Positions 10,475 to 60,939 of a DNA stretch of 64,000 nt are shown piece after piece. Each line of letters opens with the position of its first letter. Position 1 is the first letter of the stretch. Source of the stretch: Macrostomum lignano (Eukaryota); NCBI GenBank assembly GCA_002269645.1, contig NIVC01002768.1, positions 78,180 through 142,179 of the forward strand, in the 5' to 3' direction. The notes beneath the pieces were generated by a model. The model saw only the letters and a program-made list of their open reading frames with translations. It was not told the DNA's origin and did not search any database. Position numbers and translations under genes: made by a program.

Positions 10475-12697
10475 ATGGAATGTCAGTCTGGCGACCAATT
10501 CTCAATGGTTCAGAGACTTTTGCTGGATAAGCCAGCCATGATTCAGAGTCTGCTGCTGCGTTATCAACAAGTGATGGGAAATTTTTTTACTAGAGATTTG
10601 CGGAGCATCTTAAATGAGTGTATAGTTTCTGAGCGATTAGATTTGCTATACCAGGTGGATGTTGACGACGAAAGTAATCGACTTCTACTGCTGCAGCCAA
10701 GGATTGGCTTGAACGCGTTTGTTAAAGACTTTCATAACCGCGTTCTTAAATACTTTGACCAGGCAATGCCTTTGTGCTGTTCTAGCATTGGGGATATTGG
10801 AGATCGCCTTAATCTAGCAATGGAGGATAGAAAGTTGTGCTTTGAGCTTGAGTTCAAGCGATTTCTTTCCGACCAAGGCTATTCCTTTCTACTTGCCGTC
10901 AGAGAACTTCTAGACTACGAGGCTTCGCTTCTAAAATATGCTGCCTCTTCAGGCACAACTTCCACTTCAAGACAAATCACACTGTTAAAGAGGAAATTAT
11001 CGTGTGACTCTGTATCCGAGAAGAGCATTGTTCTGACTAAATTCGCTAAGCAAGTTGGGCACGCTCCGAATCGAATGAAAGATATTGAAGCTGCCTTGAA
11101 AACTTTTAAAGACAGCGAATTCTTGCGTCCTGAATCGATTAGTCCTGCACTGGAGGCAATGACGGAATTAGCTTCCTGCTTCTCTAGTTCGTTTAAGAGA
11201 GATCTCATCAATGATGAAATAAAGAATTCTGAATTAAATTCCTTAGCAGTGACAATCAATGGGTTCGAAAAGCTCCAAAGAGCCAGTCATGTTCTACAAA
11301 ACGAAAATGCTTTTAAAGAAAAGGCAAGACAGCTTTTTTATAGATCCTTTTTCGTGTCGACCCAATCGTGCCAAGTAATTCGCGAAAAGAAGCACGTTAA
11401 GTTCGAAGTGCAGCTCCTTCTTGGTGATTTCTTTAGTCAATACTTTCAATTCGAGAACCTAGGCATCGACGCGGTGCTTTTAAATGAAGAAGCAGTAAAA
11501 AACTTGGAGAATAGGCCTGTTAGTGACAACTGGGATCAGCTAAGCGACGCCAATAAAATAATCTTCCATGAGAAGAATAGTCTGCAGTTGACACGCGGCA
11601 ACAAATTCTCGATCAAACTATCATTGCAAGTTGCTAAGCTACCTACGCGAAAAAATCCCGTTTGGGCTCAAAAATTTGTTTTCTGCTTTCGAGCTCAAAG
11701 CAGCGATTCGTTTTCCACGTTTTGCCAGTCTCGCCCTGTGACATTCATCACGAACGACAACCAGAGAATGGAATCTTCGGCGTGCATTGCTTACGAGAAC
11801 ATGTTTCCTCTGCCCGTTCGTCTCGGCTTTGATGTGTATGACTCAATAACTGCCGAGCAATGCGTTGAATTGATTGACTGTTACTTTTTCGACGAGATAA
11901 AGTCGAATGGATTTGAGGGGCACAATCGGTCATACTTTCTAAAGAAGTGTAGCGAGCTGATGCAGAAGACAGGCAAGGCTAATAGAATTACGTTCGAAGA
12001 TCTTATCAAGGTGCAATTCATTGGAGAGGTCAAGCCCAAGTCGCTATGGGATTTTGTGTACACGTGCGTCAAGTTCATTAAGGATCATGGCCATAGCATG
12101 TGGATGAAAGGTCTAATTTTTGGATTTATCACCAAGTCGGAAGCTATCAATACTATCAAGCGTTACATTAAAAGCGAGTCAAATAAAACAGATTTCGCTC
12201 TGTTAAGGTTCTCTGAGACAACAGCAACCGTAACAGTTTGCTATTCAGCTTCAACTACAGACGGGTGCACCCCAGGCAATTCTACTTGCAGAATCGAGAA
12301 TCGGTGCCCCAAGAATGAAAGCTATTTTAGCTCAACGGCGCTCGCCAAATTCTGTGACGATCCGCTGTCTACACAGACTTTAATTGTTACTCGCTCAGGC
12401 TCCCTTGAGAACTCTAGTATGTTGCGCGACATGATTCCGATCGAAGACAATGTTCCAGGTTATGTACCTCTGCGTAGACGGGGCACTTCCGGATCGCCTG
12501 AAAATCTGAGCGAACTGGCTAGCTCTATTGCTAGTGTGTCCGTCTGCAGTCCAATTGGCTCTGATCTCTCACTCATGTCTCCGTCTGTGACGAGCGAGTG
12601 CTCGCAGCAGCAGCAGCAGCATTCTAACCCAATTACCGACTCTAACAATCCGATTCCGCATGATGTAATGGAGTTAGTTTTTGATTATCAAAAGTAG
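10475..12697 (+). CDS. STAT: STAT family transcription factor (STAT5-like), 740 aa, intronless CDS
   Basis: N-domain-like GNFFTRDLRSILNECI; DNA-binding-domain start SFFVSTQSCQVIREKKHVKFEVQLLLG; SRPVTFITNDNQ...IAYENMF; linker/SH2 SLWDFV...WMKGLIFGFITKSEA...FALLRFSE with the phosphotyrosine-binding Arg; C-terminal PGYVP tyrosine motif; Ser/Gln-rich tail. Confidence 0.92.
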   Translation: MECQSGDQFSMVQRLLLDKPAMIQSLLLRYQQVMGNFFTRDLRSILNECIVSERLDLLYQVDVDDESNRLLLLQPRIGLNAFVKDFHNRVLKYFDQAMPLCCSSIGDIGDRLNLAMEDRKLCFELEFKRFLSDQGYSFLLAVRELLDYEASLLKYAASSGTTSTSRQITLLKRKLSCDSVSEKSIVLTKFAKQVGHAPNRMKDIEAALKTFKDSEFLRPESISPALEAMTELASCFSSSFKRDLINDEIKNSELNSLAVTINGFEKLQRASHVLQNENAFKEKARQLFYRSFFVSTQSCQVIREKKHVKFEVQLLLGDFFSQYFQFENLGIDAVLLNEEAVKNLENRPVSDNWDQLSDANKIIFHEKNSLQLTRGNKFSIKLSLQVAKLPTRKNPVWAQKFVFCFRAQSSDSFSTFCQSRPVTFITNDNQRMESSACIAYENMFPLPVRLGFDVYDSITAEQCVELIDCYFFDEIKSNGFEGHNRSYFLKKCSELMQKTGKANRITFEDLIKVQFIGEVKPKSLWDFVYTCVKFIKDHGHSMWMKGLIFGFITKSEAINTIKRYIKSESNKTDFALLRFSETTATVTVCYSASTTDGCTPGNSTCRIENRCPKNESYFSSTALAKFCDDPLSTQTLIVTRSGSLENSSMLRDMIPIEDNVPGYVPLRRRGTSGSPENLSELASSIASVSVCSPIGSDLSLMSPSVTSECSQQQQQHSNPITDSNNPIPHDVMELVFDYQK

Positions 12698-13847: not shown

Positions 13848-14189
13848 ATGTCTGCCGAGAACCTGAGCGAAATGGCCTGCACCTATGCGGCCCTCATTCT
13901 GGCTGACGACGATGTTGAAGTGACCGGCGACAAGATCTCCGCCATTCTGAAGGCCGCCGGCGTCACTGTCGAGCCGTTTTGGCCCAACATGTTCGCCCGG
14001 GCGCTCAGCGGCGTGAAGGTCAAGGACCTGCTGTCCAACGTTGGCTCCTCTGTTGGCTCCGCCCCCGCCGCTGGAGCCGCCGCTCCGGCCGCCGCTGCAG
14101 CCGCCGTAGAGCCGGCAGCGAGCAAAGCCAAGGAGCCGGAGCCGGAGTCCGAGTCCGACGATGACATGGGCTTCGATCTGTTCGGCTAA
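13848..14189 (+). CDS. RPLP1: 60S acidic ribosomal protein P1
   Basis: [37 protein letters not shown], Ala-rich hinge, acidic [10 protein letters not shown] end, AATAAA at 14285-14290. Possible 5' UTR intron at about 13778-13831. Confidence 0.97.
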
Positions 14190-15269
14190 TAACTGTTAAC
14201 TGATTCAAGTTTCTATCGATTCCCGTCTAACTGTCAAAAAATATGATAGCAAAAACGTGTCTTGAAATGTTGATCTGACGGTTTAATAAACCAAGTTTAG
14301 CCGCGCGCAAGGTTTGGTCTTTGTGGCGAACAAATTGTTGGCTGGAATGAAAATGCTACCATTGTTTTCTTTTGAGTATTTGTCAAATTTATTTATTTTC
14401 TGTGATCGATACTGAAGTATCGGTTGATGACGTCATAGATGATGCACTGACCATTGTCTAGTTCTCTGTCATGGGTATCAACAATGATCTTGGATATTTT
14501 CGTCTCTTTTGCAAGCTCACTTTCACCATTAGCCGTACGTTCTCAATCAGCTGTTTTACCATTTTCAAGCCCTCAATAAATAGCGTAGTGTAGCCTCAGG
14601 GTACATGTATGAAAGTTAATAGGGAGCTGCAAAGAAATGGCTTGAGAAAAAACTTTTAGAGTACGGCAATTTCTTCATATAAACCAAAGTCTGATGGTTA
14701 AACGATAACCCAAACCTACCTACGCTAGCCATAAACTTTATGCTTTTTATTATTGTATTTCGATCTTTCATTTCTCAGTGCACACTGCCGGGTGAGTATG
14801 TTGTTTCCTGCAACGTGGCAAATAAAATCAATTTTACACGCAGTGATCGAACATTTCACCTCCGTCCGTCAGTCAATTCTATTAAACTACATTGTATACA
14901 AAGCAAAAAAAAGCAGCATTCTCGCAGTTTTTACAAACTTCCTATTCGAAATCCCCCGATTGACAACCGGAAAATTTTCAATCGTGCCAAGTAAGACAGA
15001 AGACATTCTTCATTTCTATTCTGTATCGTTTATACTGTTTTTATTACTAGAAGTAGTATATCGAGGATATTTGGGCTCCGTTCTTTATATGAAACAAATT
15101 GAATTAATGTAGACAGGGTCGGATTTTCCGAGTAAAACCGCTGCTGCTATGAATGTACAATTGTACATTGCTCAAGGACTTCTAGAAAAGTCTTATGGAC
15201 TAGTGGCTACAAACTAAAGAAACGCACCCCATTGCAGTTTCCTGATCGCAGTCACTGAACACAAGATAT

Positions 15270-15462
15270 TAGCGCCGAATTAGCGCCACAGTCCACGTTT
15301 GAGTGCCACAGCCTAGGTTTTAGCGCCACAGCCTAGATTTTAGCCCCACAGTTTTGCTTTTAGCGTCACCGTTTAAATTTGTGTCACAGCCTGGATTTTT
15401 GCGCCACAGTCTAGATTTTAGCGCCACAGTCTAGATTTTAGCGCCACAGTCTAGATTTTAGG
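15270..15462. repeat. 20-bp minisatellite, short version
   Basis: TTTAGCGCCACAGTCTAGAT-type units, about 9 mostly degenerate copies. Confidence 0.85.
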
Positions 15463-16033
15463 TTTTTAATCGTGCTTATAATAGTTTCTTATTCATTCCT
15501 GGGGGGGCGTCTTCGATCCCTTTGACCTTCTTATACACAAGTCAACAACAGTTGAGCATTATTTGAGATGGGTCAGTGCCCCATTCAGCTGCCCCCTTTC
15601 TCCCCTGTTCCGCGACCCCTGGAAACAAAATATTGCATCCATGCAGTTTTAGTTAATTTGCAATAACAGTGCGGTAGACTTTCGTAATCCCTGTCCTGTT
15701 TAGCCCTTGGTCTTAGTTTCCATTCCAGTTGCTTGTTAGGGAATCCATGGTCGCCGTCTAGAACCAAACCTCGTGATGTTTCTAAAATTAGGTGCAGTTT
15801 ATTATTTTTCACTACTTAAATAATACGTGAGTCATGTGAACGGACTTCTCTCTCCTCCCTGTCAACCTGTTTGCGAAGAAAGATGTAGAACATTCTAGAA
15901 TTTTCCATAGCCAATCCCAGTCGAACAGCAGTACCGTATAAAATACTGATGTCCATGACGCCGGAGCCCAGCAGTTTTGCTTCATTAAATTCTCGGCATA
16001 CCGCAGCCGTCGAAACCCACAGCAATTGGCGTC

Positions 16034-16835
16034 ATGCCAAACCCCATTCCAAATCGACTGCGGCCTCCGCCAAGAACAGTTGGCCTCAACGAGGCTGACC
16101 GCTCGCGCCTTCCCAGCTGTTCGGACTGCCATCTGCCAGCCTTTGGGGCCTTTAAGACGCCGCATGGCTGTCGCTTGTGCGGATTCTGCTGGGGTCGATT
16201 GGCCTGTTTGGAGAGGCTGCCCTGTCCAGGTAAATCTTAATTGGATAAATTATTTATAATCATATTTTAAGTAAACGAGTTGATTTTGGAGATATAAAAA
16301 GACGTCAATTTACAAAGAAAGTTACAATCACATAAATAGCTGGATAGATAGAGACAAAATATTTTAGTATAGTGGACTGGCCATCTAGTGCCCCCTTCGG
16401 GATAATTCAATTGTGTCAAGTGTAATGCTCTCGTTAGAGAAATGCCGGGCCAGATGTACATGTAAATAAAAATACAGACAATAAACGTTTATGGTCATTT
16501 TTCAACTTCCAGGGGCCAGGAAGCATCACGCCTGTCGAGGCGCTGTCAAATTCCACCAGGACGAGTGCAGCCCCGACCAGGAAGCGAGGCTGCAGCTGAG
16601 CGGCGTGTTTATTGAGTGCTGGAACTCATCGTCCGGCTGCCTCTACATCATGCCCTACATGAAACTGAGCACTCACGAGGCTCAAGAGTGCCAATTCAAG
16701 CTGGTGTCCTGCACCGGCTGTCATCGCAACCTGCTGCGCCGAGATCTTGGCGATCATCAGCGCAGTGACGAGTGCCGGCAAATTTTGATAGCCAATTTAG
16801 GCAACTATGGCGTGCCTAATGATGGCGACAAGTGA
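16034..16835 (+). CDS. TRAF-like RING/zinc-finger protein lacking the MATH domain, copy 1 (172 aa)
   Basis: Exons 16034-16229 and 16513-16835 (CCAG|GTAAAT...TTCCAG|GG, phase 1). CSDC-x11-HGCRLCGFC-x11-CP, then PDQEARLQLSGVFIECWNSSSGC...H...C...CTGC...H...C, matching the TRAF6-type N-terminal region. Confidence 0.85.
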
Positions 16836-17321
16836 ACCGAGAGAACAGTTCCTCCTTTTCTGTCTGTCTCTCCGTGGTCTCCTTGGTGGAAAAAAAACAA
16901 AATGACGCAAAATGGCGACATTTTTCGTTTAAAAAACCGACTTACGTATAACATGCGCTTTTTCGTTACTTAACAATTATTTAGTAGTATTTCACGATTA
17001 TTTCTCCTGATAAAAAATCCTATACAGTCACGTGTAGTGTAACTCTGTCGCATCAAATTCTTTTCTTCATTAACTCCTACTCTACATTTGTAGAACTTTA
17101 TCATGCACCTATATTATTTGCGAGGAAATAAATACGAGCTAAAATTTCAAATACGATCTCTTGAAAACTCTCATTTCACTTAAGAGCATATAGCGTCCAT
17201 TTACATTTTCATTAGACTTTATTTTTAATTAAAAATCTTCGTTAAAACTGTCTCATTAAGTTGTAAGTAATGTGCTCATTGCTCTACTAATAGCTCAATA
17301 GCATAAGCGTGTTAGTATAGC

Positions 17322-17480
17322 CCAGGGGTCGGCAAACTCCGGCCCGCGATCCGCATACAGCCCGCGAAGCCTCTATCCGGTCCTCGGGTCCTTTGAAACT
17401 TCTCTCCTTTCCTCTCACCCCTCTTCTCTCCTCTTCTATCTCCTCTCCTCTCCCCTCTCCTCGCATCTCTCCTCTTCTCT
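17322..17480. mobile_element. hAT/Charlie-like MITE, one end plus CT-rich core
   Basis: CAGGGGTCGGCAAAC...CGGCCCGCG terminus followed by a CT-rich tract. Related to the elements at 25.4, 58.9 and 62.6 kb. Confidence 0.6.
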
Positions 17481-17945
17481 CTCCTCTATTCTGTGTGAGT
17501 GTGAGGCTGTGCGTATGACTGCGTACAGTATCCGCGCGCTTGTGTGCCTGCTCAGGGGAGTCGGCGGAATTGGCAGTAATGCCTCTCGCCGGTTGTGTGA
17601 CCGATATACCGATGGACAATAACACGAAAATATGTTGACAATCACACGCATCTCAAAGTGCAGTTAATGGGCAACGAAACGCAGCTTGTCAATGTCGCTT
17701 GAAGTGCACCATGGTGTACTCAGCCCCCTGCCTCTAATAATAAAAACCTAAATCTGGGTTTAAATCACAGCCGTTGGTTTCATAACTTCATCACACCATG
17801 GCAGATGATGATGTTAAAACTCGTTAAGCTTATTAAAAATTTAAGAAAGATTCAGAGAAACAAACCATGCAAAAATGCAGTCAGCTTTGGCGCAGATCGA
17901 ATTCGCGCCACACTTAGCTAACAGATTTATAGAAAGTTGCAGATC
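17480..17945 (+). other. Duplicated remnant of the SelW copy-1 intron, with no exon
   Basis: TGCGTATGACTGCGTAC...CTCAGGGGAGTCGGCGGAAT...TGTCGCTTGAAGTGC...GAATTCGCGCCACA aligns to 27470-27790. Confidence 0.85.
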
Positions 17946-18105
17946 AAACTAGATTTTAGGCTTTTTATCACAGAATAGTTCTTTAATTAACTACCGGGGT
18001 CTTTGACCACTCCTCTCCTCTTGACCTCTCCACCTCTTCTAGATAGATACCCCAGCTGACAGCAGTTGAGTATTATTTGAGAGAGGTCAATGACCCTATC
18101 TCAAT

Positions 18106-18770
18106 TATGGGTCACGATTCCGGGATTTAGGGCTTTTTCCGGGATCCCGGGATTCACAGGGTCGGGATTCAATCCCGGAACGTTAATGCTATGTTTTTAT
18201 AATGTCTGATATAATAGCAAGTATTTTATCATAAAATGGCAGTCAGTTCAAATATGGAACATACATGCATACATGTCCATTCTCCGTTGCCCACTTTGTA
18301 AGGTCTTTAATGTTGTTTGAGTTGAGTCTTGTTTAAATCATTTAACGTTGAGATTTGATTTTAAAGTTTAAACTCGTAGTCGTGAGTCCAGACTCCAGAC
18401 TGACAAGTGACAACGTGAATGCCCAGGCGGTAGTAGGTTGTGACTTGTGTTGTGACTGTGAGTCCTTGTGACTCCTTGTGAGTGTGCCTCATGCCACGGG
18501 CCAATCCACGAGTCATGTGCATTTGTTTTGCAATGTGCATCCTGCTAGTGCTACTACATAGTATGTAATACATGTAATACATTCATATTGCTTTGCATAG
18601 TAATGTTCTCACGTTAGTCACGTGATAAAAAAAAGTAATTCACAGCGTTATTATAACAATGTTACGACAAGGATGGTACTGGAAAAATATCAATCCCGGG
18701 ATCCCGGGATTCGACATTTCCTAATCCCGGGATCCCGGGATGGACAGAATCCGGGATTTTGTGACCCCTA
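18106..18770. mobile_element. Non-autonomous hAT-type element (MITE)
   Basis: Imperfect TIRs TATGGGTCACGATTCCGGG / CCGGGATTTTGTGACCCCTA, subterminal CCCGGGATCCCGGGA repeats, and an 8-bp TSD ATCTCAAT (18098-18105, 18771-18778). The paralogous site near 22415 is empty. Confidence 0.88.
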
Positions 18771-19208
18771 ATCTCAATGCCAGGACTCAGCTGCCCCTTT
18801 TGCCCTCTTCACTACTTTTCCGTGGCCACTGGAAACAAATTATATCCATTTACAGTGTATAGTTAAATGCAATAGCAGTGCAGTAGACTTTCGTAATCCT
18901 CGTCCTAGTTTAGCTCTGTCTTGGTCTCCATTCCAGTTGCTGGTTTGGGAATCCATGGTCGTCGTCTGGGCCAAACCTCGTGATGTTTCTAAAATTAGTA
19001 TTTTTTCAGTCCTAAAGTACTTCGTGAGTCGCGTAAACGGACCCCTCCCCACCCTGCAAGGCTGTTTACAAAGTTTTCGAACATTCTAGAATTTTCTATA
19101 GCCAATCCCAGTCGAACAGCAGTACCGTATAAAATACTGATGTCTATAAATACGAGCGTGATTAGGCTATGCCGCCGAAGCCCACAGTTTGCTGTTTTAA
19201 TTCTCAGC

Positions 19209-20045
19209 ATGCGAATACGACCTCCACCAAGAACAGTTGGCCTCAACGAGGCTGACCGCTCGCGCCTTCCCAGCTGTTCGGACTGCCATCTGCCAGCCTT
19301 TGGAGCCTTTAAGACGCCGCATGGCTGTCGCTTGTGCGGATTCTGCTGGGGTCGATTGGCCTGTTTGGAGAGGCTGCCCTGTCCAGGTAAATCTTAATTG
19401 GATAAATTATTGATAATCATATTTTAAGTAAACGAGTTGCTTTTGGAGATATTAAATTTACAAAGAAAGTTACAATCACATAAATAGCTAGATAGATAGA
19501 GACAAAATATTTTAGTATAGTGGACTGGCCATCTAGTGCCCCCCTTCGGGGCGGCCAATAAGCAAGGAGCAAAATAAATTTATGCAAATCCATTAAAAGA
19601 TTATTCAAGAGATTATTCAATTATGTCAAATGTAATGCTCTCAGTAGAGAAAGGCCATATCAGATATAAATGTAAATAAAAATACAGACAATAAACGTTT
19701 ATGGTCATTTTTCAACTTCCAGGTGCCAGGAAGCATCACGCCTGTCAAAACGCTGTCAAATTCCACCAGGACGAGTGCAGCCCCGACCAGGAAGCGAGGC
19801 TGCAGCTGAGCTGCGTGTTTGTCGAGTGCTGGAACTCATCTCGCGGCTGCCTCTACATCATGCCCTACATGAAACTGAGCACTCACGAGGCTCAAGAGTG
19901 CCAATTCAAGCTGGTGTCCTGCACCGGCTGTCATCGCAACCTGCTGCGCCGAGATCTTGGCGATCATCAGCACAGTGACGAGTGCCGGCAATTTTTGATA
20001 GCCAATTTAGGCAACTATGGCGTGCCTAATGATGGCGACAACTGA
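19209..20045 (+). CDS. TRAF-like RING/zinc-finger protein, copy 2 (~166 aa)
   Basis: Exons 19209-19386 and 19723-20045. N-terminus shortened to MRIRPPP; same Cys/His pattern; start codon inferred. Confidence 0.82.
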
Positions 20046-21054
20046 TGCGAGAGAACAGCTTCTGTCTGTCCCTTCGAGGTCTCCTCTGTGGAAAAAAAAC
20101 AAAATGACGCAAAATGGCGACATTTTTCGTTTAAAAAACCGACCTACGTATAACATGCGCTTTTTTTCACTACTGAATAGTTTAGTAGTATTTCACGATA
20201 AATATGTAACAAACAAAAACAAAAACCTGTGCTATTGCTTGTAGTGCAGGCTGTTTTGATAATTTTTTGCGAGTAAATAAATACAAGCTATAAAGTTTCA
20301 TATACGATCACTGAAACTCACATGTCTCCTACGATTCTAGCGTTCATTCGGCTTTGTACCGGTACTGAACTTTCATTTTAAACGGTGGATCTTCGTTATC
20401 GTTAAGTTTGTCTCATTAAGTTGTAAGTAAATGTGTCCATTGATTTGGCAATAGCCAAGGACAACTGAATCAATTCGTAATATCAACGTAATATCAATCC
20501 CCAATGAAGAATCTCCCTACCCTGAAACCCCCCAGTCCCCATGCCCCGGTGTTTGGCTTTAAGCTTATATAGTTGGGTTGAAGCAACCTAAAAAAGCTCA
20601 AATTCGAAATAAGCACTATCTAAAACCCTAAGGAGACGAAATTATGATTCTATCAAAAATAAAACTATTTTATCTACCTAAAGTTCAAGAAGGCACCACC
20701 TGGATGCCGGTTCTGGCCGGGCCCCTGTTCCCCACTGGCACATCCGGGCATGCGTTGTCCTGGTGTAGAACCCACCTTACAGACACTTGCTTCGGCTGCA
20801 GATCATGGACATGGACCAGTATCTAAAAAATGGTCTTGGATATTTTCGTCTTCCGCAAGCTCTCATCATGAGCCGTACGTTCTCAATCAGCTGTTTCAGC
20901 ATTTTCAAGCCCTCATAAATAGCGTCGGGGTCATGAGAGGTTTCATGCCTCTCCGGGGTACATGTATGAAAGTTAATAGGGAGCTGCAAAGAAATGGCTT
21001 GAGAAAAAACTTTTAGAGTAAAGCAATTTCTTCATCAAAGCATCAATCCTATAG

Positions 21055-21378
21055 TAAAAAATCTGGCAGTCAAAGTCTCAGTCAAAAGTCTGGCAGCCAA
21101 AAGTCTGTCGGTCAAATGTCTGGTAGTCAAAAGTCTGGCAATCAAAAGTCTGGTAGTCAAAAGTCTGGCAGTCAAAAGTCTGGTAGTCAAAAGTCTGGCA
21201 ATCAAAAGTCTGGCAGTCAAAAGTCCGGCAGTCAAAAGTCTGGCAATCAAAAGTCTGGCAATCAAAAGTCTGGTAGTCAAAAGTCTGGCAGTCAAAAGTC
21301 TGGTAGTCAAAAGTCTGGCAGTCAAAAGTCTGGTAGTCAAAAGTCTGGCAATCAAAAGTCTGGCAATCAAAAGTCTGG
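21055..21378. repeat. 15-bp minisatellite
   Basis: CAAAAGTCTGG(C/T)A(G/A)T units. Explains the SGSQK, FDCQT and ARLL ORFs. Confidence 0.95.
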
Positions 21379-21629
21379 TTATTATTATTAGTAGATTTTA
21401 TTATTACTAGAAGTAGTATATAGAGGATATTTGGGCTCTGTTCTTTATATGGAACAAATTGAATTAATGCAGACAGGTCGGATTTTCCTAGTAAAATAGC
21501 TGCTGCTATGAATGTACAATTGTGCATTGCTCAAGGACTTCTAGAAAAGTCTTATGGACTAGTATAGCTGCAAACTAAAGAAACGCACCCCATTGCAGTT
21601 TCCTGACCGCAGTCACTGAACACAAGATA

Positions 21630-22290
21630 TTAGCGCTGAATTAGCGCCATCGGTTAAATTTTAGCGCCAAAGTCGAGATTTAGCGCTAGAGACTGCATTT
21701 TAACGCTACAGTCTACATTTTAGCGCCACAATCTAAATTTTAACGCCGCAGTCTGGATTTTAGCGCCACAGTCTAGATTTTAGCGCCACAGTCTAGATTT
21801 TAGCGCCACAGTCTAGATTTTAGCGCCACAGCCTGGATTTTAGCGCCGCAGTCTAGATTTTAGCGCCACAGCCTGGAATTTAGCGCCACAGCCTGGAATT
21901 TAGCGCCACAGCCTGGATTTTAGCGCCACAGCCTGGATTTTAGCGCCGCAGTCTAGATTTTAGCGCCACAGTCTAGAATTTAGCGCCACAGCCTGGAATT
22001 TAGCGCCACAGCCTGGATTTTAGCGCCACAGCCTGGATTTTAGCGCCACAGCCTGGATTTTAGCACCGCAGTCTAGATTTTAGCGCCACAGTCTAGAATT
22101 TAGCGCCGCAGTCTAGATTTTAGCGCCACAGTCTAGAATTTAGCGCCACAGCCTGGATTTTAGCGCCGCAGTCTAGATTTTAGCGCCACAGTCTAGATTT
22201 TAGCGCCACAGTCTAGATTTTAGCGCCACAGCCTGGATTTTAGCGCCGCAGTCTAGATTTTAACGCCACAGCCTAGAATTTAACGTCGCA
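21630..22290. repeat. 20-bp minisatellite, expanded version
   Basis: TTTAGCGCCACAG(T/C)CT(A/G)GAT, about 32 copies, at the position paralogous to 15270-15462. Confidence 0.95.
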
Positions 22291-23070
22291 ATTTATATTT
22301 GTGGTTTTTTTAAATAAAAAAACTTTTTTATTCATTCTCAGAGGTCTCACCCCTTGACCTTCTAAATGGATGTACCAGTCAACAGGAGTTGAGTATTATT
22401 TGAGAGGGGTCAATGCCCCATTCTCAACGCCAGACGCCAGCTGCCCCCCCCCCCTGTTCCGCGAGCCCTGGAAACATCCAGTTTTAGTTAAATGCTAAAT
22501 GCAATAACAGTGCAGTTGACTTTCTCAATTCCTGTCTTAGTTTAACCCTGTCTTAGCCCTCCATTCCAGTTGCTGGTTTGGGAATCCATGGGCGCCCGCG
22601 CCGTCTGGGCCGAACGTGGTGTTTCTAAAATTAGGCTTTTATTTACTACTTACATTTAAGTACTTCGTGCGTCACGTGAACGGACTTGTCTCAGGGGTGG
22701 GTAAGGGGGCAGTAGACAATGCTGAAGCCAACGATGTGCTTGCTCTTGTGCAAGAATAATGACCTTGAAATTGGCGTTACAAATTTCAATCAGTAATAGT
22801 AAATTTATCCCTATTATTCTTTACAATTAATTTTAAAGCAAACTAAAAAGATTTTGAGTCTACTTTTGTAAAAAAATAAGGGCGTGATTGTGTGTAACAA
22901 TAGTGGATCTACTTCATATTACTTCAGTAAATCCAGCAATACCATACGAATACAATAGTCTATAAATAGCCAAATAGGAGCGAAATCTCGCTATGCCGCC
23001 GGAGCCTAAAGTTTTGCTTTATTAAATTCTCAGCATACCGCATCCGTGTAAACTGGCAAAAATTGACACC

Positions 23071-24224
23071 ATGCCAAATCCAATTCAAAATCGACTGCGG
23101 CCTCCGCCAAGAACAGTTGGCCTCAACGAGGCTGACCGCTCGCGCCTTCCCAGCTGTTCGGACTGCCATCTGCCAGCCTTTGGGGCCTTTAAGACGCCGC
23201 ATGGCTGTCGCTTGTGCGGATTCTGCTGGGGTCGATTGGCCTGTTTGGAGAGGCTGCCCTGTCCAGGTAAATCTTAATTCATAAATTATTCATGATCATA
23301 CTTTAAGTAAATGAGTTAATTTGGAGATATTAAATAACCGCAATTTACTATGAAATTTAAAATCGCATAGATAGCTAGATAGACGGGATTATTGGGATAT
23401 CCCGGCCAATGATAATGTAGTTATTATATCAATGTAAAGATATAATTGCTAGAGAAAGCAGAGAGGAAGGAATTGGAGTAGGAGAGGAAAGATGAGAGAG
23501 GAGAGGAGAGAAGAGAGGAGAGAAGAGAGGAGAAAGGAGAAGGAGTAGAGAACACAAACACCTGTTTCTTCGCTGCTTTCTTCTGCAGTACCCTCTAACA
23601 ACTTCGCCTGTTCGTTCCGATGACCGTCTCTTTGACGCTTTCATTAGGCATCGTGAAACTAAAGTGAATATAAGGATCGTGCTCTAGTAAGCTACCAGTA
23701 GGATTTTTGCAATTGGCTATGTCTGTTTTAATTTTTACTATTCTCCATTGGGTATCGGATAACACGAAACTGACGCAAGTAATCAATCGGGCTGTGGGTA
23801 TCGTATGGCGTAAGACTGTCGAGAAAGTCCGTGCCAGATATACATGTAAATAAATACACAGACAATCCAATCAACGTTTATGATAATTTTTAACCTTCCA
23901 GGTGCCAGGAAGCACCACGCCTGTCAAGGCGCTGTCAAACTCTACCAGGACGAGTGCAGCCCCGACCAGGAAGCGAGGCTGCAGCTGAGCTGCGTGTTTG
24001 TCGAGTGCTGGAACTCATCTCGCGGCTGCCTCTACATCATGCCCTACATGAAACTGAGCACTCACGAGGCTCAAGAGTGCCAATTCAAGCTGGTGTCCTG
24101 TACCGGCTGTCATCGCAACCTGCTGCGCCGAGATCTTGGCGATCATCAGCGCAGTGACGAGTGCCGGCAATTTTTGATAGCCAATTTAGGCAACTATGGC
24201 GTGGCTAATGATGGCGACAACTGA
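23071..24224 (+). CDS. TRAF-like RING/zinc-finger protein, copy 3 (172 aa)
   Basis: Exons 23071-23266 and 23902-24224. The intron carries an extra insertion at about 23390-23830. Confidence 0.85.
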
Positions 24225-25352: not shown

Positions 25353-26437
25353 TAGATCAGGCAAACTTTTTTACTTCAAAAACCAGATACCAAAAACCAG
25401 ATACCAGATTACTTCAAAAACCTGCAGCCATAACCTTAGCTTATGGCTGCGGGCCAGATTAGAGCAGAAAGGAAAGGAAATAGAGAGGGAGAGAAGTGCA
25501 AAGAGATGAGATGAGAGAGACGAGGAGAGGAGATGATAAGAGTAGAGTGGAGAGAAGAGAAAGGAGTGGAGATGGGAGAAAAGAGAGAAGAGGGAAGAGA
25601 AGAGAAAAGAGAGAAGAGGGAAGAGAGGAGAGAAGAGAAAAGAGAGAAGGGGGGAGAGAGGAGAGGAGAGAAAAGAGAGAAGAGGGGAGAGAAGAGAAAA
25701 GAGAGAAGAGGGGAGAGAGGAGAGAAGAGAAAAGAGAGAAGAGGGAAGAGAGGAGAGAAGAGAGAAGAGGGGAGAGAGGAGAGGAGAGAAAAAGAGAGAA
25801 GAGGGGAGAGAAGAGAAAAGAGAGAAGAGGGGAGAGAGGAGAGGAGAGAAAAGAGAGAAGAGGGAAGAGAGGAGAGAAGAGAAAAGAGAGAAGAGGTAAG
25901 AGAAGAGAGAAGAGAAAAAGAGAGAAGAGGGGAGAGAAGAGAAAAGAGAGAAGAGGGAAGAGAGGAGAGAAGAGAAAAGAGAGAAGAGGGGAGAGAGGAG
26001 AGGAGAGAAAAAGAGAGAAGAGGGGAGAGAAGAGAAAAGAGAGAAGAGGGGAGAGAGGAGAGGAGAGAAAAAGAGAGAAGAGGGGAGAGAAGAGAAAAGA
26101 GAGAAGAGGGGAGAGAGGAGAGGAGAGAAAAGAGAGAAGAGGGAAGAGAGGAGAGAAGAGAAAAGAGAGACGAGGGAAGAGAGGTGAGAAGAGAAAAGAG
26201 AGACGAGGGAAGCTGAGAAGAGAGAAGAGAAAAAGAGAGAAGAGGGGAGAGAAGAGAAAAGAGCGGAGAGGGGAGAAAGGAGAGAAGAGAAAAGAGAGAA
26301 GAGGGGAAAGAGGAGAGAAGAGGTGAGAGAGGAGAGACGAGAGCTTGAGCGGGCCGGTTGGCTGTTTTGAAGTTTCAAAAAACCCGAGGGGCGTATAGAG
26401 ACGCTTTGCGGGCCAGATTTTGCCGACTCTGCCCAGA
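25353..26437. mobile_element. hAT/Charlie-like MITE with expanded GA-rich core
   Basis: Ends CAGGCAAACTTTTTTAC... and ...GCGGGCCAGATTTTGCCGACTCTG, with a purine low-complexity tract at about 25480-26340. Confidence 0.7.
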
Positions 26438-32554: not shown

Positions 32555-34854
32555 CTAGTCGTCCTCGACATCGTCTGTTTCCGGCACTCGGCCGGTGATT
32601 GGTGCCGGCTGCTTGATGCCGGTGGACGAGTAGGTGGTGAGCGCGTACACCAGGCTGTACGGCTCGGCATGCGGGACCGCCAGCCGGCTGAAGTGCACCC
32701 TGTAGCAGCTGGCAGGCACCACTACGGCCTGGCCGGCTGACAGCACCACACTCCTGTTGCCATGGTTACCGGGACAGCAGGCCGACTTGTGCGACAAAGT
32801 GACTCTCAGGACTCCATGCAGGCCCATCAGCACCACCTGCCCGTTGAACTCGCTCAGTTCGCCGATGTACTTGTCCTCAGCTGACCCCGGTTCGCCGGCC
32901 AACAAGTAGAATCCCCTGGCCAGGCCGATCTCCGAGTCCGGCACGATGAAGGGCGGGCGTGGCACCAGCTTGCGCACCGCTCTGATGGCTGACATGTGGC
33001 CGAAGATCCAGGACACCAGCTCGACATTGGCGGGCGGCACCTCCGACTGCAGCAGCTCCGACAGAGTCGACGGGCCGCCGGCAGGCACCGAGGCAACGCG
33101 GTTGGAGCCGGCGCTTACCTCGGACCAGGCTTCCAGCACCTGGGATTGGCGTGACGCCAGCTTTTTCTTATTGGCAGCCTAGATTAGCAATCCACTCTAC
33201 TCCTTCATTGGTGTAGGCTAGATTAGCAATCCATTCTTCATTAATGCAGGCTAGATTAGCAATCCATTCTATTTTTCAGTGATGTAGGCTAGATTAGCAA
33301 TCCATTCTATCCCTCATTGATGCAGGCTAGATTTGCAATCCATTCTATTCCTTTATTGATTTAGGCTAGATTTGCAATCCATTCTATTCCTTCATTGATT
33401 TAGGCTAGATTAGCAATCCATTCTATTTTTCAGTGATGTAGGCTAGATTAGCAACCCATTCTACTCTTCCATTGATATAGGCTAGATTAGCAATCCATTC
33501 TATTCCTTCATTGATGCAGGCTAGATTTGCAATCCATTCTATTCCTTTATTGATTTAGGCTAGATTTGCAATCCATTCTATTCCTTCATTAATTTAGGCT
33601 AGATTAGCAATCCATTCTATTCCTTCATTGATGCAGGCTAGATTAGCGATCCATTCTATTCCTTTATTGATTTAGGTTAGATTAGCAATCCATTCTATTC
33701 CTTCATTGATGCAGGCTAGATTAGCAATCCATTCTATTCCTTTATTGATTTAGGCTAGATTAGCAATCCATTCTATTCCTTTATTGATTTAGGCTAGATT
33801 AGCAATCCATTCTATTTTTCAGTGATGTAGGCTAGATTAGCAATCCATTCTATCCCTCATTGATGCAGGCTAGATTTGCAATCCATTCTATTCCTTTATT
33901 GATTTAGGCTAGATTTGCAATCCATTCTATTCCTTCATTGAATTAGGCTAGATTAGCAATCCATTCTATTTTTCAGTGATGTAGGCTAGATTAGCAACCC
34001 ATTCTACTCTTCCATTGATATAGGCTAGATTAGCAATCCATTCTATTCCTTTATTGATTTAGGCTAGATTAGCAATCCATTCTATTCCTTTATTGATTTA
34101 GGTTAGATTAGCAATCCATTCTATTCCTTTATTGATTTAGGTTAGATTAGCAATCCATTCTATTCCTTCATTGATGCAGGCTAGATTAGCGATCCATTCT
34201 ATTCCTTTATTGATGCAGGCTAGATTAGCAATCCATTCTATTCCTTTATTGATTTAGGCTAGATTAGCAATCCATTCTACCATACACCGAACCCACCGTT
34301 CTGCGCAGCTCCGCAAAGCTGACGGGCCGGTGGCCGCTGTCGATGACATGAAACGGCACAATGTGCCGATCGATGGAGCGCCGGTAAGCGGCCCGGCCCG
34401 CTTCATTGTTCAAAGCTACTCTGGGAATTTTTTTCAGCTTCTGACAGCCGCAGCAGAGCTCTGGCTCTCTGTAGAACGGATTTGGCACCAGGCAGGCCTC
34501 CCGGTCGCGGCTGTGCAGAAACTCGGACTTGTACGCACCCAGCTGCACCGACAGCCATCGGTAAGACTTCAGGTAGACCAAATTCAGGTAGGACAGAGCC
34601 CGGCCGGTGCGGACAGAATTCGACACGGTGGGGAAGCTGTTTTCCAAGCAGCGCAGGCTCACAGAGGCGAAGGCCCACAGAATCAGTAGGCGGCACACAA
34701 GCCAAGCGAGTCGGCCCAGAGTCCCGCTGTCTGCACCTCTGCTGCTCTGCTGTCGCTTGTGCAACTGCCGAAGCAGCTCCTGGCACTGCTCAGCGGGCAC
34801 CGGGTCTGCCAGGTGCTGGCTCACGAGCTCAACTGCCCGTCGATCGCGCTGCAT
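32555..34854 (-). CDS. C6orf89/BRAP-like type II membrane protein, paralog B (~393 aa)
   Basis: Proposed exons 34854-34297 (ACG|GTGGGT) and 33178-32555 (CTAATCTAG|GCT). N-terminal TM segment, CLVPNPF..LCCGC, WIFGHMSAIRAVRKLVPRP, cupin-like C-terminus. Family assigned from remembered motifs; the junction is less certain. Confidence 0.65.
33179..34280. repeat. 39-bp minisatellite filling the paralog-B intron
   Basis: Unit GGCTAGATTAGCAATCCATTCTATTCCTTTATTGATTTA and variants, about 28 copies. Confidence 0.95.
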
Positions 34855-35604: not shown

Positions 35605-37829
35605 CTAAGTCCTGGGCTGCTTTCTCTTGGCAGGATGCGCCCCATTGTAGATGAAGCCGATCTGCACCAGCGCTGCCCGGTCGTCAAGGCCGGCAGGGCC
35701 GTCGGCAGCCGGTGGCCTCCCAACCAGCAGCTCGTAGCAGTCGGTAGGGAAAATCAGCGCCCCACCAGGCGCCAAGTCGATCGGCGCCGACTGGGGCGGT
35801 TTGTCGCCGTCGCAGCAGGCGGCCTTCGGAGCCAGTCGGGCCGTCAGGCGGCCGCTGAGCGGCAGGGCGAAGGCAAGCTGGCGCCTCTCGGCGAAGTCGC
35901 CAGCCGAGAACAGGCGGCCAGGTGGCAAGGCGCGGCCGGCCAGCAGCAGCGAGACGGCGCCCATTCGCTCTGTGCGCTGGCCGAAGTAGCGCGGCCGGGG
36001 CACCAGCCGGCGGAGGGCTCGAATGGCCGACAGGTGATGAAAAGACCACAGCAGCACCTGAACGGCGGGTTAAATAATTATGTCATTAGAATGGGGTCAC
36101 TGAAGGCGAAGGATGGTCACTGAAGGCGAACGATGGTCACTGAAGGCGAAGGATGGTCACTGAAGGCGAAGGATGGTCACTGAAGGCGAAGGATGGTCAC
36201 TGAAGGCGAAGGATGGTCACTGAAGGCGAAGGATGGTCACTGAAGGCGAAGGATGGTCACTGAAGGCGAAGGATGGTCACTGAAGGCGAAGGATGGTCAC
36301 TGAAGGCGAAGGATGGTCACTGAAGGCGAAGGATGGTCACTGAAGGAGAAGGGAGGTCACTGAAAGAGAAGGGAAGTCACTGAAGGAGAAGGGAGGTCAC
36401 TGAAAGAGAAGGGAAGTCACTGAAAGAGAAGGGAAGTCACTGAAAGAGAAGGGAAGTCACTGAAGGAGAAGGGAAGTCACTGAAAGAGAAGGGAAGTCAC
36501 TGAAGGAGAAGGGAAGTCACTGAAAGAGAAGGGAGGTCACTGAAGGAGAAGGGAGGTCACTGAAAGAGAAGGGAGATCACTGAAAGAGAAGGGAGGTCAC
36601 TGAAAGAGAAGGGAGATCACTGAAAGAGAAGGGAGGTCACTGAAAGAGAAGGGAGGTCACTGAAGGAGAAGGGAGATCACTGAAAGAGAAGAGAGGTCAC
36701 TGAAAGAGAAGGGAGATCACTGAAGGAGAAGGGAGATCACTGAAAGAGAAGGGAGATCACTGAAGGAGAAGGGAGATCACTGAAGGAGAAGGGAGATCAC
36801 TGAAAGAGAAGAGAGGTCACTGAAAGAGAAGGGAGATCACTGAAGGAGAAGGGAGATCACTGAAAGAGAAGGGAGATCACTGAAAGAGAAGGGAGATCAC
36901 TGAAGGAGAAGGGAGATCACTGAAAGAGAAGGGAGATCACTGAAAGAGAAGGGAAGTCACTTAAAGAGAAGGGAGGTCACTGAAAGAGAAGGGAGATCAC
37001 TGAAGGAGAGAAATGCACAGCAGAACTGGGCAGAGAATCATAAATGCAGCTGACTCACCTGTCCGGGCGGCGGCAGCTCAGCCCGTGCAGGCCCCGATTC
37101 CCGAGCCGGGAACAGGTCCTTGAAGCATCGCACAGTCGACTGGCCCAAATCAACGGAACGCCCTTCCTGGTACATCGGCAGCGTCTCGAGCTGGTTGCCG
37201 CCTCGCTCGAAATCCGGCCGATTCTCGGCCACAAAGCTGGCCAGCGCGGCGAAATCAACCTCCGCCTCGTCCGACGGCCACCGCGGCATCGCCGGAGTGC
37301 CAGCCACCTGGAAGGGCTTCACCACCCGGCTGTACAGCGAGTCGATGAGCTGGGCGACTGCCGTCAGGTTGGCCTGATCGACGCGCACCCGGGTGACGGC
37401 CGGCTGGCCACAGCCGCAGCAGAGCGGCTGCGGTCGCCTGTTGAATGGGTTCGCCAGCAGGCAGCCGCCCAGATTGCGCCCGGCCTCGGTGTCGTAGAGC
37501 CGCAGCGAATGCGACACCCGCCGGAACAGCTTCTGCACGTACAGGTCGGAGGCGGCCAGCCAAGCGGTGCTCTGCGTGGCGTAGCCGCCGGCCACGAGCT
37601 CGAGGCTCAGCGTGAGCAGCAGGGCCGCTGCGGCCGTCAGGCACAGGAGCAGCCGGCCGGTCCACCGCATGCAGGTCCAGCGCTTCTGGCCATCGCCAGT
37701 GTTGAACCTTCTGGCCAGGCTGCGCAACTGCGCGCTGCTCAGCCGGTCCAGGCTGGCTCGGTGGCGGTCGAGCAGCTGATCGATTTGCTGCTCCAAATGC
37801 CGCTTGTCAGTGGCTTCCGTGTTGCTCAT
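35605..37829 (-). CDS. C6orf89/BRAP-like type II membrane protein, paralog A (407 aa)
   Basis: Exons 37829-37059 (CAG|GTGAGT) and 36057-35605 (TTCAG|GTG), phase 0. TM segment, CLLANPF..LCCGC, WSFHHLSAIRALRRLVPRP, ACC and P..CY motifs shared with paralog B. Confidence 0.72.
36095..37008. repeat. 20-bp minisatellite filling the paralog-A intron
   Basis: GTCACTGAAGGCGAAGGATG grading into (G/A)TCACTGAAAGAGAAGGGAG, about 45 copies. Confidence 0.95.
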
Positions 37830-38169
37830 TGCTGCCGCATGCAGGTGTGTCTTCTTGGCTTAGCTGACTTAATTAGCTGTTCGTATTCTCCTGCACAGCA
37901 TGGGCTTTTATATGCGCACGCATAGGCTTGTCTCTGTCTCTCTCCACTATTGTCTGTATTGTACAGGCAATACAAGACATTGCTGGCCAGCCTGGCCTCA
38001 CGTGTCGAGCATCGCATGCAGGGTGTACAATGGAATAAAAAGCACGATGCAATGCGCTTTACGAGCTGTATATTTGATAAAGTCTCTATCTTTTTTTCGT
38101 ACTCGTACATTCCATACACAGAACTGTGAATTATTGAATAATTGTAGGATTAGTATTCCCAGACACAAA

Positions 38170-41100: not shown

Positions 41101-41800
41101 TCTCTGTCCCGGTTTGCACACGGAGTGGATCCAGATGGAAGACAATCTCTGTCTCAGTTTGCACACGGAGCGGATCCAGATGGAAGACATTCTCTGTCCC
41201 AGTTTGCACACGGAGCGGATCCAGATGGAAGACATTCTCTGTCCCAGTTTGCACACGGAGCGGATCCAGATGGAAGACAATCTCTGTCTCAGTTTGCACA
41301 CGGAGTGGATCCAGATGGAAGACAATCTCTGTCTCAGTTTGCACACGGAGCGGATCCAGATGGAAGACATTCTCTGTCCCAGTTTGCACACGGAGCGGAT
41401 CCAGATGGAAGACATTCTCTGTCTCAGTTTGCACACGGAGCGGATCCAGATGGAAGACATTCTCTGTCCCAGTTTGCACACGGAGCGGATCCAGATGGAA
41501 GACAATCTCTGTCTCAGTTTGCACACGGAGCGGATCCAGATGGAAGACATTCTCTGTCCCAGTTTGCACACGGAGCGGATCCAGATGGAAGACATTCTCT
41601 GTCTCAGTTTGCACACGGAGCGGATCCAGATGGAAGACATTCTCTGTCTCAGTTTGCACACGGAGCGGATCCAGATGGAAGACAATCTCTGTCCCAGATT
41701 GCACACGGAGCGGATCCAGATGGAAGACAATCTCTGTCCCGGATTGCACACGGAGCGGATCCAGATGGAAGACATTCTCTGTCCCAGTTTGCACACGGAG
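38170..41800. repeat. 45-bp satellite, about 80 copies
   Basis: Unit CAGATGGAAGACAATCTCTGTCCCAGATTGCACACGGAGCAGAAC with regional variants. Source of the 1200-1300 aa artefact ORFs. Confidence 0.97.
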
Positions 41801-42123
41801 CGTGGAACTATTGATAAGTTCGCACGGATCAGAAAAAATCTTAAATACTCGAACGTTTTTTATTATGAGTGCATTTATATACCACTAAATATTCAGTTAT
41901 AATTAGTAAAGACTGCACAGACGACTATCTCTTCCCAATAGCCTCATGCTATCCGTATTTGAGTTGAGTACATTATTAAGCAATGCAAAATTAGATGACT
42001 AAGCCGTAGATCTTTCTACTTAAGCAATGAGATGACTTATTTGACAACAATGTTCTCCAAAAAAGTTTTGTTGATACTCAATCAGTAGACAAGAACAGTT
42101 CACCATACCCCCAAGTCAAGGAA

Positions 42124-43685: not shown

Positions 43686-44094
43686 TGATAACAACTATAC
43701 AAGTACGGAACGAAAAAATGATAAAGATCGTAGCTCCGAGTCAGCAATTAAAAATCAATACACCGGATCCGGGTAGTGAATAATAATAAAGGAAAAATTT
43801 CGAAACTGGTTTTTATTGAGCAAAAGCGCATCATTTTTCATTAATTGACGAGAAAAACTGTTTTATAGACTACTTGTTAGCGTAAGTGCGATAATACGAA
43901 TTTTAATTAAAAATCAATTGTCCAATTTAAAAAATTATTGAGAGGCGCTTGATTTTCGTTTTGAAAATTTCCTAATTGAAAACTAATTTTTTTTCAGAAT
44001 GTTACGTCACACAACTCTACTGTTAGTAGGCGAGTAAAGTGTTTTTTATGCCCGACGAAAACAGCATCAGCAATCTTAGACTGATATAAATATT

Positions 44095-51579
<7,485 letters not shown>

Positions 51580-60205: not shown

Positions 60206-60939
60206 CGCATCAGTTTTCATTTCTAAAGCTGTTAGTTTTAGCATTTGCACTTTTGTGTCCGTGCAAGTACACTGTGGGTGTTGCTATGAACGAGACCTGT
60301 TGCATTTTTGACCTCTGCTCTTGTGTTAACTAAGTCTCTTGTCTCTGTAGTTAGCTCTTATTGTCGTGGTTTCTTCCTCATTTTGCACAGTTTTAAACCA
60401 GTCACTGGTTGCGTGGTGTGGTGTTTAACTATATACTAATGCCAGCATCATCAAAGCACCTAGACAACTACTGGGTACTTGGTAGTACCAGTTTATTTCG
60501 TTTTTCTTGTGCATTATCCAGCAAATTTGGTGCAGCTAAAGAATGCGTCTCTAATGAAAAATTGCACGCCTGCGAATGCGTCGTTTTTTTAAATCTCGTA
60601 TCAGATTTGTTTCGTTTCTGCGACTTCTGCGCAGTTGGATCGGTGCCCCGCTTTGCTCTCCTTCCTCTCTAGTTGGTGACAGGAAGTTCAGCTTACAGGC
60701 ATATAGTTTGCCAGCACTGCATCTTGCTGTGCTCACCACACCACGCTGGGTCCTCTGGATGAAGTCAAGATTAATAGCATAGAATGAATTACAGTATAAA
60801 CCAGCAGCAGACTCCACTGTACCCTATACTCTCTCAGACAATTAATTAGTGATAGTTTAATTATCACTTTGGGGTGGACTCTGCCTTATTTTTTAGGATT
60901 CTCAAACTATAGCGTCCTTCGGCTCTCGTTGTCCGTGAA

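Follow-up and report, generated by a model that had tools for sequence, protein, structure and literature searches.

Tandem genes for TRAF-derived RING and zinc finger proteins with a putative re-wired RING zinc site in Macrostomum lignano

The N-terminal region of TRAF6 (3HCS, 5VO0) carries a RING, a linker helix, and zinc fingers, in this order. Residues Ile72 and Leu74 of TRAF6 contact the ubiquitin-conjugating enzyme (E2) Ubc13, and an I72D/L74R mutant does not bind Ubc13; an arginine of the linker helix and an arginine of the first zinc finger (ZF1) of the partner protomer prime ubiquitin (PMC5702613). Ubc13 activity is low or absent in the RINGs of TRAF2, TRAF3, and TRAF5 (7L3L, 3KNV). 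TRAF5 has weak activity alone yet forms active heterodimers with TRAF6, and the same authors proposed that TRAFs binding no E2 could regulate ubiquitin transfer via RING heterodimers (PMC5702613). TRAF1 is a truncated natural member of the family that keeps the coiled coil and MATH domain without a RING and acts by mixing into full-length TRAF complexes (PMC5702613). Here we describe the opposite truncation. A 64,000-nucleotide stretch of the Macrostomum lignano genome (contig NIVC01002768.1, positions 78,180 to 142,179; hereafter, the window) carries three tandem genes, c1, c2, and c3, whose products, called mini-proteins below, keep a RING and zinc fingers. On balance, the sequence features make it somewhat probable that the array consists of TRAF genes reduced to the RING and zinc fingers, with a re-wired RING, that serve as regulators or decoys of full-length TRAFs rather than as autonomous Ubc13-type ubiquitin ligases (E3s).

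RINGs with other ligand sets than C3HC4 provide a second point of comparison. In a cross-brace RING, ligands 3 and 4 share one zinc site. The C2H2C4 RING of MDM2 has a non-C3HC4 ligand set and still adopts the cross-brace fold. The same is true of the C4C4 RING of CNOT4 (1E4U), which was the best PDB match of the mini-protein RING in a single-sequence search, at a marginal E value of 0.024 that implies no specific relationship. The RING-C2HC5 of Ostreococcus tauri is described as belonging to the RING-HC type, with metal ligands 3 and 4 arranged differently. The mini-protein ligands, His44 and Cys46 plus six cysteines, fit the C2HC5 name, an equivalence that holds by description only; the algal type is a single domain from a survey, reported once, unrelated to TRAFs, and of unproven E3 activity.

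The gene array and its homology to TRAFs

The listing of open reading frames and direct reading confirmed three two-exon genes, collinear on the + strand, as are all features given in this section. Exon 1 of c1 (16034..16229) encodes the N-terminus, RING ligands 1 to 7 (C29, C32, H44, C46, C49, C52, and C64), and the first base of the Gly66 codon. A GT..AG intron of 283 nucleotides (nt) in phase 1 (16230..16512) divides the RING after C-P-G, and exon 2, with the stop (16513..16835), encodes ARKHHAC, whose Cys73 is a candidate eighth ligand, followed by the linker helix, ZF1, the second zinc finger (ZF2), and a tail. Splicing restores homology to the paralogs. In c2, exon 1 (19140..19386, as in the 189-residue UniProt entry A0A1I8GJZ2) and exon 2 with the stop (19723..20045) flank an intron of 336 nt (19387..19722); in c3, exon 1 (23071..23266) and exon 2 with the stop (23902..24224) flank one of 635 nt (23267..23901). 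Both introns are again GT..AG and in phase 1, and that of c3 contains a low-complexity stretch (about 23424-23644) that the c1 and c2 introns do not have. Exon 1 ends in each copy with CTG CCC TGT CCA G/GTAAAT, and the acceptor reads TTCCAG/G(G or T) GCC AGG AAG CAT CAC GCC TGT, where slashes mark the exon boundary. Since the Gly66 codon is divided as G/GG or G/GT, the full RING motif requires splicing; the unspliced frame terminates after CPGKS.

A 36-nt promoter-like block, CCAAT followed by TATAAAA, lies about 90 nt 5' of the c1 ATG (15911..15946), and an identical block precedes the conserved coding start of c2 by about the same distance (19102..19137); their promoter role is putative. Only 3 nt separate the c2 block from the ATG at 19140, which may therefore lie 5' of the transcript start; a second in-frame ATG at 19209 (MRIRPPP) is the likelier start. 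The spliced products thus have 172 residues for c1, 189 for c2 (166 from the second ATG), and 172 for c3. In c3, a TATA-like element of presumed function, TCTATAAATAGCC (22959..22971), is found about 110 nt 5' of the ATG. AATAAA polyadenylation signals follow c1 (17127..17132, 292 nt past the stop, inside a block conserved with c2) and c2 (20276..20281, 231 nt past the stop). Neither AATAAA nor ATTAAA occurs in the 700 nt downstream of c3, whose homology to c1 and c2 stops just before their signal.

The three proteins are 94-97% identical, and each copy reads C29-SD-C32-x11-H44-G-C46-RL-C49-GF-C52-x11-C64-P-G/A67-RKHHA-C73, the slash marking the phase 1 intron. ZF1 follows as C101-x6-C108-x11-H120-x4-C125 and ZF2 as C132-x2-C135-x11-H147-x5-C153; beyond them, a tail of 19 residues runs to a stop at the homologous codon in all three copies. 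A reading of this DNA made earlier from its letters alone (the sequence-only reading) had described three copies of this motif with TRAF zinc fingers and a shared stop codon, and both the open reading frames and the spliced translations confirm it. An origin of the tail by read-through of a former intron was considered and found unsupported. It is well supported that the protein of about 172 residues comprises only a RING, a linker helix, and two TRAF-type zinc fingers, which is the layout of the N-terminal "RZ2" part of a TRAF.

The mini-proteins are homologs of the RING-ZF1-ZF2 part of TRAFs. An exhaustive phmmer search against 1.84 billion cluster representatives gave 38 relatives, the best of which are M. 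lignano proteins of 269-551 amino acids (E 5e-15 to 2e-10; 38-39% identity). A word-indexed protein search with the family alignment gave six entries only, all from M. lignano. The nearest nonself match, paralog PAA62526 (P0005; 551 amino acids), combines a RING bearing His-Gly-Cys at ligands 3 and 4 (HGC) with zf-TRAF and a MATH domain. The latter matches TRAF5, TRAF3, and TRAF2 with E values of 1e-34 to 1e-28 (TRAF5, 7.6e-34), and the N-terminus of the same paralog matches TRAF6 at 3e-16; the closest relatives of the mini-proteins are therefore bona fide TRAFs. We then searched the PDB with a profile (A1) of the mini-proteins and their nearest relatives, which matched the RING and zinc fingers of TRAF6 at 5e-21, TRAF5 at 5e-18, and TRAF2 at 1e-12, aligning QTPhGcRlC with QTPCGHRFC. 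The AlphaFold2 model of c3, made from the 38-sequence alignment, has a mean predicted local distance difference test score (pLDDT) of 86.7 and a predicted template modeling score of 0.75. In Foldseek, it matched 3HCS (TRAF6 RING-ZF1-3, E 7e-9), 7L3L (TRAF5/TRAF6), and 3KNV (TRAF2 RING-ZF1), with further matches to the RING-ZF units of LNX (LNX1/LNX2), RAG1, and SIAH. TRAF6 is thus the best match by both profile and fold. The two also have in common the motif QTP-x-G-x-R-[FL]-C and the PD..R motif of the linker.

Membership in the TRAF family rests on profile and fold because single-sequence domain calls do not settle it. Pfam gave no RING match at E <= 1 on the three products, and zf-TRAF, Sina_ZnF, and TRAFD1 appeared at E ~0.02, under their cutoffs (16 bits versus 27 for zf-TRAF). 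Of the checks that the sequence-only reading had proposed, structure prediction thus leads to TRAF6, TRAF5, and TRAF2, while the profile search succeeds with the family profile, falls below threshold with zf-TRAF, and fails with the RING models. The single-sequence PDB search returned, besides CNOT4, the C1 domain of chimaerin at a marginal E of 0.027; a C1 domain reading was rejected, as profile and fold both give TRAF. The motif is kept in paralogs of 24-39% identity and the profile reaches 5e-21, so the pattern seen in the three copies is not due to chance.

At their N-terminus, the mini-proteins carry a RING and, after it, TRAF-type zinc fingers, both with homologs in TRAF2, TRAF3, TRAF5, and TRAF6; the C-terminal coiled coil and MATH (TRAF-C) domain are absent. 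Pfam found no MATH match on the three products. We also ran tblastn across the 64-kb window with the post-ZF2 parts (coiled coil, more zinc fingers, MATH) of seven homologs, namely, five M. lignano HGC paralogs and two more distant MATH-region matches, and obtained nothing significant; a control query recovered six of six exons at ~1e-8. The lack of a MATH domain, also claimed earlier, agrees with the transcript-derived GenBank models, which stop at the same codon on this scaffold and on its sister scaffold. Strictly, by the definition of the TRAF domain, the mini-proteins are not TRAFs but TRAF-derived RING-ZF proteins.

The genes are already deposited in GenBank and UniProt but uncharacterized. 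Over positions 13071-34224, the window is 100% identical to scaffold NIVC01002768.1 of assembly Mlig_3_7. The spliced c3 product is exactly PAA55344.1/PAA60093.1 (hypothetical protein BOX15_Mlig034207g1/g2), and that of c2 is exactly A0A1I8GJZ2, a "TRAF-type domain-containing protein." The sister scaffold, NIVC01002193.1, is 95-98% identical and bears the same array, annotated as three separate genes. GenBank gene models for this species derive from a genome-guided RNA-seq transcriptome (PMC5730564), which lends indirect support to expression and to the two-exon structure. Another UniProt entry, A0A1I8GJ82 (338 amino acids), is a c1-c2 fusion that uses a GT overlapping the c1 stop (GAC AA/GTGA, 16830-16838) and an acceptor just before the second c2 ATG (19200-19211). 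The literature makes no mention of Mlig034207, Mlig009505, Mlig033907, or sequencing run SRR24204725 (the source of a relative described below), and on Macrostomum and TRAFs, it offers just a report, in general terms, that TRAFs are expanded in planarians.

The second zinc site of the RING

Ligands 3 and 4 of the mini-protein RING are exchanged with respect to TRAF RINGs: in the profile alignment, H44 and C46 form H-x-C where TRAF6 and TRAF5 have C-x-H. The sequence-only reading had claimed this exchange, taking TRAF6 to read C-G-H (TPCGHRFC), and the alignments to the PDB chains of TRAF6 (QTPCGHRFC ... CPVD) and TRAF5 agree on both counts. Since ligands 3 and 4 belong to the same zinc site, the re-wired site keeps one His. 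The canonical C3HC4 pattern (C-x2-C-x9-39-C-x1-3-H-x2-3-C-x2-C-x4-48-C-x2-C) does not describe the mini-proteins, in which ligand 3 is His, ligand 4 is Cys, and the eighth position is Ala67. Seven ligands stand at canonical spacing and the fold search gives TRAFs and other RINGs, while the eighth ligand is assigned from conservation only.

The exchange is not special to the mini-proteins. QT[PW]HGCR[IL]C occurs in at least eight other clusters at 90% identity, seven from M. lignano and one from sequencing run SRR24204725, and the HGC-bearing clusters include full-length TRAFs with a MATH domain. The M. lignano HGC paralogs (Mlig002242/030561, the former paired with PAA62526; A0A1I8HJH6; Mlig029665; Mlig001616/003153/022970; and Mlig021475/023403) resemble the mini-proteins in the swapped RING, the CPG-x3-AC insertion, the Cys before P-D, ZF1, and ZF2. 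They differ in their length (326-551 amino acids), their additional zinc fingers, their coiled coil, the MATH domain present in two clusters, and the "RRE" linker arginine that they keep. The remaining phmmer matches, from ticks, a rotifer, a soft coral, and a euglenid, do not have the exchange; they read C-G-H or leave the RING pattern unmatched. No Pfam RING model finds any HGC paralog at E <= 0.01. A scan of Joint Genome Institute (JGI) metagenome contigs with [QK]T[PW][HQ]G[CF]RLC gave 75 pattern matches, none of them a relative. A TRAF-like protein from an ENA metagenome (P0013; locus L003, 948-1565) reads QTTEGDRLC, so that Glu and Asp take the places of ligands 3 and 4; its ligands 7 and 8 form the canonical C-x2-C.

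Overall, it is well supported that these proteins form a TRAF subfamily with a re-wired second RING zinc site, so far seen only in Macrostomum. It is a lineage-specific, modest variant of a known family. The earlier idea of a variant RING class therefore survives as far as the exchange itself is concerned; it does not single out the mini-proteins, and a C2HC5 arrangement had already been named. The same reading had named, as grounds for its refutation, that HGC might already be common among TRAF-like proteins, and within Macrostomum, this is partly so.

A replacement for the eighth ligand probably lies in an insertion that follows ligand 7. In TRAF6, the eighth ligand is Asp108; the mini-proteins have Ala at this position, followed by an insertion of ~6-9 residues that contains Cys73. 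The insertion is conserved in the family as CPG-x3-AC (CPG-x3-5-AC overall) and reads CPG-ARKHH-AC in the mini-proteins, where Cys73 aligns with the conserved "AC" Cys of the paralogs. Two of these (P0026 and P0035, Mlig031668) read QTPQGFRLC and have lost the counterparts of His44, Cys46, and the "AC" Cys together, a joint loss that points to Cys73 as the eighth ligand. In P0026 and P0035, the second RING zinc site retains just one of its four ligands, with site 1 and the zinc fingers still in place. On this comparative evidence, Cys73 is a likely candidate for the eighth ligand, located 6-8 residues after ligand 7 in the family; the C7-x8-C8 spacing of the mini-proteins is unusual. Ala at the eighth position and a replacement within HHAC had both been predicted, and of the latter motif only Cys73 is credible. 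His70 and His71 were rejected as zinc ligands, being unconserved in the paralogs.

Constraint and possible roles of the mini-proteins

We consider it well supported that the array consists of three recently duplicated, intact tandem genes. Among the three copies, synonymous divergence (dS) is 0.04-0.05 and nonsynonymous divergence (dN) is 0.016-0.027. The six copies on the two scaffolds differ by at least 12 synonymous and at least 19 nonsynonymous events, where 78% nonsynonymous events would be expected under neutrality (one-sided binomial p = 0.03). None of the 19 nonsynonymous events falls in RING codons 29-73, for which a uniform spread gives a probability of (117/162)^19, or ~0.002. The frame is open in six of six copies. 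Exons and the first ~200 nt of the 3' untranslated region are 90-100% identical across copies, and intron interiors and distal flanks are 30-70% identical. As far as sequences can tell, the strongest argument for function would be that every ligand is retained at only 24-39% identity to the paralogs.

The phase 1 intron that splits the RING sits exactly where the family-specific insertion begins. It is absent from the three paralogs checked: PAA62526 and P0052 are intronless, and P0016 has an intron at residue 294. A shared intron as a sign of origin by segmental duplication was therefore rejected. Elsewhere in the genome, a second zf-TRAF gene (locus L007, 2712-3026, NIVC01000339.1) lies ~700 nt downstream of the HGC paralog P0052, so TRAF-like genes are found in tandem there too.

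The alignment with TRAF6 bears on what these proteins might do. Asp31 and His33 occupy the positions of Ile72 and Leu74, and Leu92 and Met115 those of the linker and ZF1 arginines; by this alignment, the contact residues of a Ubc13-dependent, TRAF6-type E3 appear to be missing. The family E2 face is polar, as in TRAF2, TRAF3, and TRAF5, which are also the closest relatives of the PAA62526 MATH domain. These three have a canonical C3HC4 or C3HC3D RING, a coiled coil, and a MATH domain, unlike the mini-proteins, and TRAF5 keeps the priming arginines that the mini-proteins lost; its parallel with the role considered here is that heterodimer formation allows a TRAF RING of weak activity to function. 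Residues T42, G45, R47, P86, D87, and R91, invariant in the family, map to the stretch of the TRAF RING-dimer interface and linker helix. Our proposal is that the module would still fold as a two-zinc cross-brace RING, and that a mini-protein would pair through it with full-length HGC-TRAF paralogs, capping or modulating RING-dimer networks. With neither coiled coil nor MATH domain, it should be unable to trimerize or to dock on receptors. Together with the polar E2 face, this favors a non-catalytic RING-dimer partner over an autonomous Ubc13-dependent E3.

An autonomous RING E3 is the alternative that survives best, although we regard it as unlikely. The re-wired RING would bind an E2 other than Ubc13 by a different surface, and the zinc fingers would recruit substrates, with no TRAF partner involved. 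The absence of nonsynonymous events makes the RING core the most constrained part of the protein, and a RING with a flanking zinc finger is the active layout in TRAF6 and in LNX1/LNX2, both recovered by the fold search. Middleton et al. noted that E2 surfaces vary among TRAFs and that the E2 used may differ from one TRAF to the next (PMC5702613). Yet a hydrophobic E2 contact, Ile72, is replaced by Asp and Leu74 by His, which recalls the I72D/L74R change that kills Ubc13 binding in TRAF6, and the Ile72 position is polar in every HGC paralog.

Several observations weigh against a re-wired RING acting as a regulator of full-length TRAFs. An omega of ~0.45 indicates mild constraint only. In the sister copy of c2 (PAA60094; locus L004, 5185-6026, NIVC01002193.1), ZF1 carries C108S, accompanied by seven private amino acid changes, which may reflect relaxed constraint or sequencing error. 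On NIVC01002768.1 (Mlig_3_7), GenBank annotates c3 and not c1 or c2. Ser85 and Glu89 replace TRAF6 Phe118 and Phe122, which we take to be dimer-interface residues, so dimerization may be weakened. Without the linker and ZF1 arginines, the protein could not offer a priming surface like that of TRAF5, which favors a decoy over an E3 partner but could also point to an unrelated role. Cys84, conserved in the family (C-x-P-D), is an alternative candidate for the eighth ligand. Finally, pLDDT falls to ~78 over residues 61-80, and the zinc-site geometry and the eighth ligand are predicted only.

The first three of these points are also what one would expect if the genes were neutral or decaying fragments, the functionless 5' remnant of a TRAF gene that was amplified along with the satellite-rich DNA around it. 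So are the recent age of the duplicates (dS 0.04-0.08) amid satellites and the absence from c3 of the AATAAA common to c1 and c2. We find this account improbable. With an identity of only 39% to the nearest paralog, the truncated form must be old, yet six of six copies keep the frame, both splice sites, and all zinc ligands except for the one C108S. The RING is without amino acid change, and models based on transcripts cover c3 here and the whole array on the sister scaffold.

Longer products, in which exon 2 would be spliced to distant coiled-coil and MATH exons or c1 joined to c2 in a double module like A0A1I8GJ82, are very improbable. The GT at the c1 stop is used by one automatic model, and M. 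lignano has polycistronic precursors resolved by trans-splicing (PMC5730564). Yet no such GT occurs at the c2 or c3 stop, and the three genes remain apart in the transcript-derived models. In addition, c1 and c2 each have their own CCAAT/TATA-like block and AATAAA, while the TATA-like element of c3 is of another kind and its first 700 nt downstream contain neither AATAAA nor ATTAAA; tblastn found no MATH, coiled-coil, or extra zinc finger coding in the 40 kb downstream or elsewhere in the window.

The regulator or decoy reading can be taken one step further, to a more tentative and rather doubtful proposal. Macrostomum may have replaced the canonical TRAF RING by a His-x-Cys form whose eighth ligand sits on a 6-8 residue insertion, and the tandem 172-residue genes, with their equivalent of I72D, may have evolved specifically to cap or inhibit the RING-dimer networks of TRAFs. 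Should the re-wired RING be functional and bind two zinc ions, ligands 3 and 4 would be exchangeable and the eighth displaceable across a whole family, and domain profiles would miss such RINGs, leaving proteins annotated only as "TRAF-type" or "hypothetical." A natural RING-ZF-only TRAF with a polar E2 face would also probe how TRAF signaling is tuned by RING heterodimers that bridge or cap trimers, an idea testable in M. lignano, for which RNA interference and transgenesis exist. If these are ordinary lineage-specific paralogs, they would be just one more case of the TRAF expansion and diversification already known from free-living flatworms.

Other features of the window

Upstream of the array by 3.3 kb, a single open reading frame of 740 codons (10475-12697, + strand) encodes a very divergent STAT, with a PDB match to STAT5A (E 4.8e-9) over the DNA-binding, linker, and SH2 regions and no Pfam match at E <= 0.01. 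Between it and the array lies a called gene (about 13848-14189, + strand; locus L005, 778-1119) for a 113-residue protein with Pfam Ribosomal_60s (acidic ribosomal protein P1/P2). Farther downstream, an open reading frame on the - strand (49994-50521) encodes a Peptidase_M17 (leucyl aminopeptidase) catalytic domain (E 1.5e-16) and is probably one exon of a larger gene. Two pairs of similar open reading frames on the - strand, recognized by eye (32555-33139 with 35605-36057 and 34264-34854 with 37038-37829) and without Pfam matches, suggest a tandemly duplicated two-gene unit. Judged by eye, a 419-codon open reading frame (55439-56698, + strand) resembles a leucine-rich-repeat gene whose product ends in a Cys cap (GNPLHCGCELKWL); it has no Pfam match at E <= 0.01.

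Tandem-repeat arrays are numerous (15260-15498, 21019-21438, 21558-22417, 25474-26347, 37900-41900, 44000-45700, 46770-48776, 60864-61589, and 62751-63426). Satellites with 20-nt and 15-nt units surround the genes, the former being found next to c1 as well as c3. Other arrays are GA-rich, and those of several kilobases yield long spurious open reading frames in several frames.

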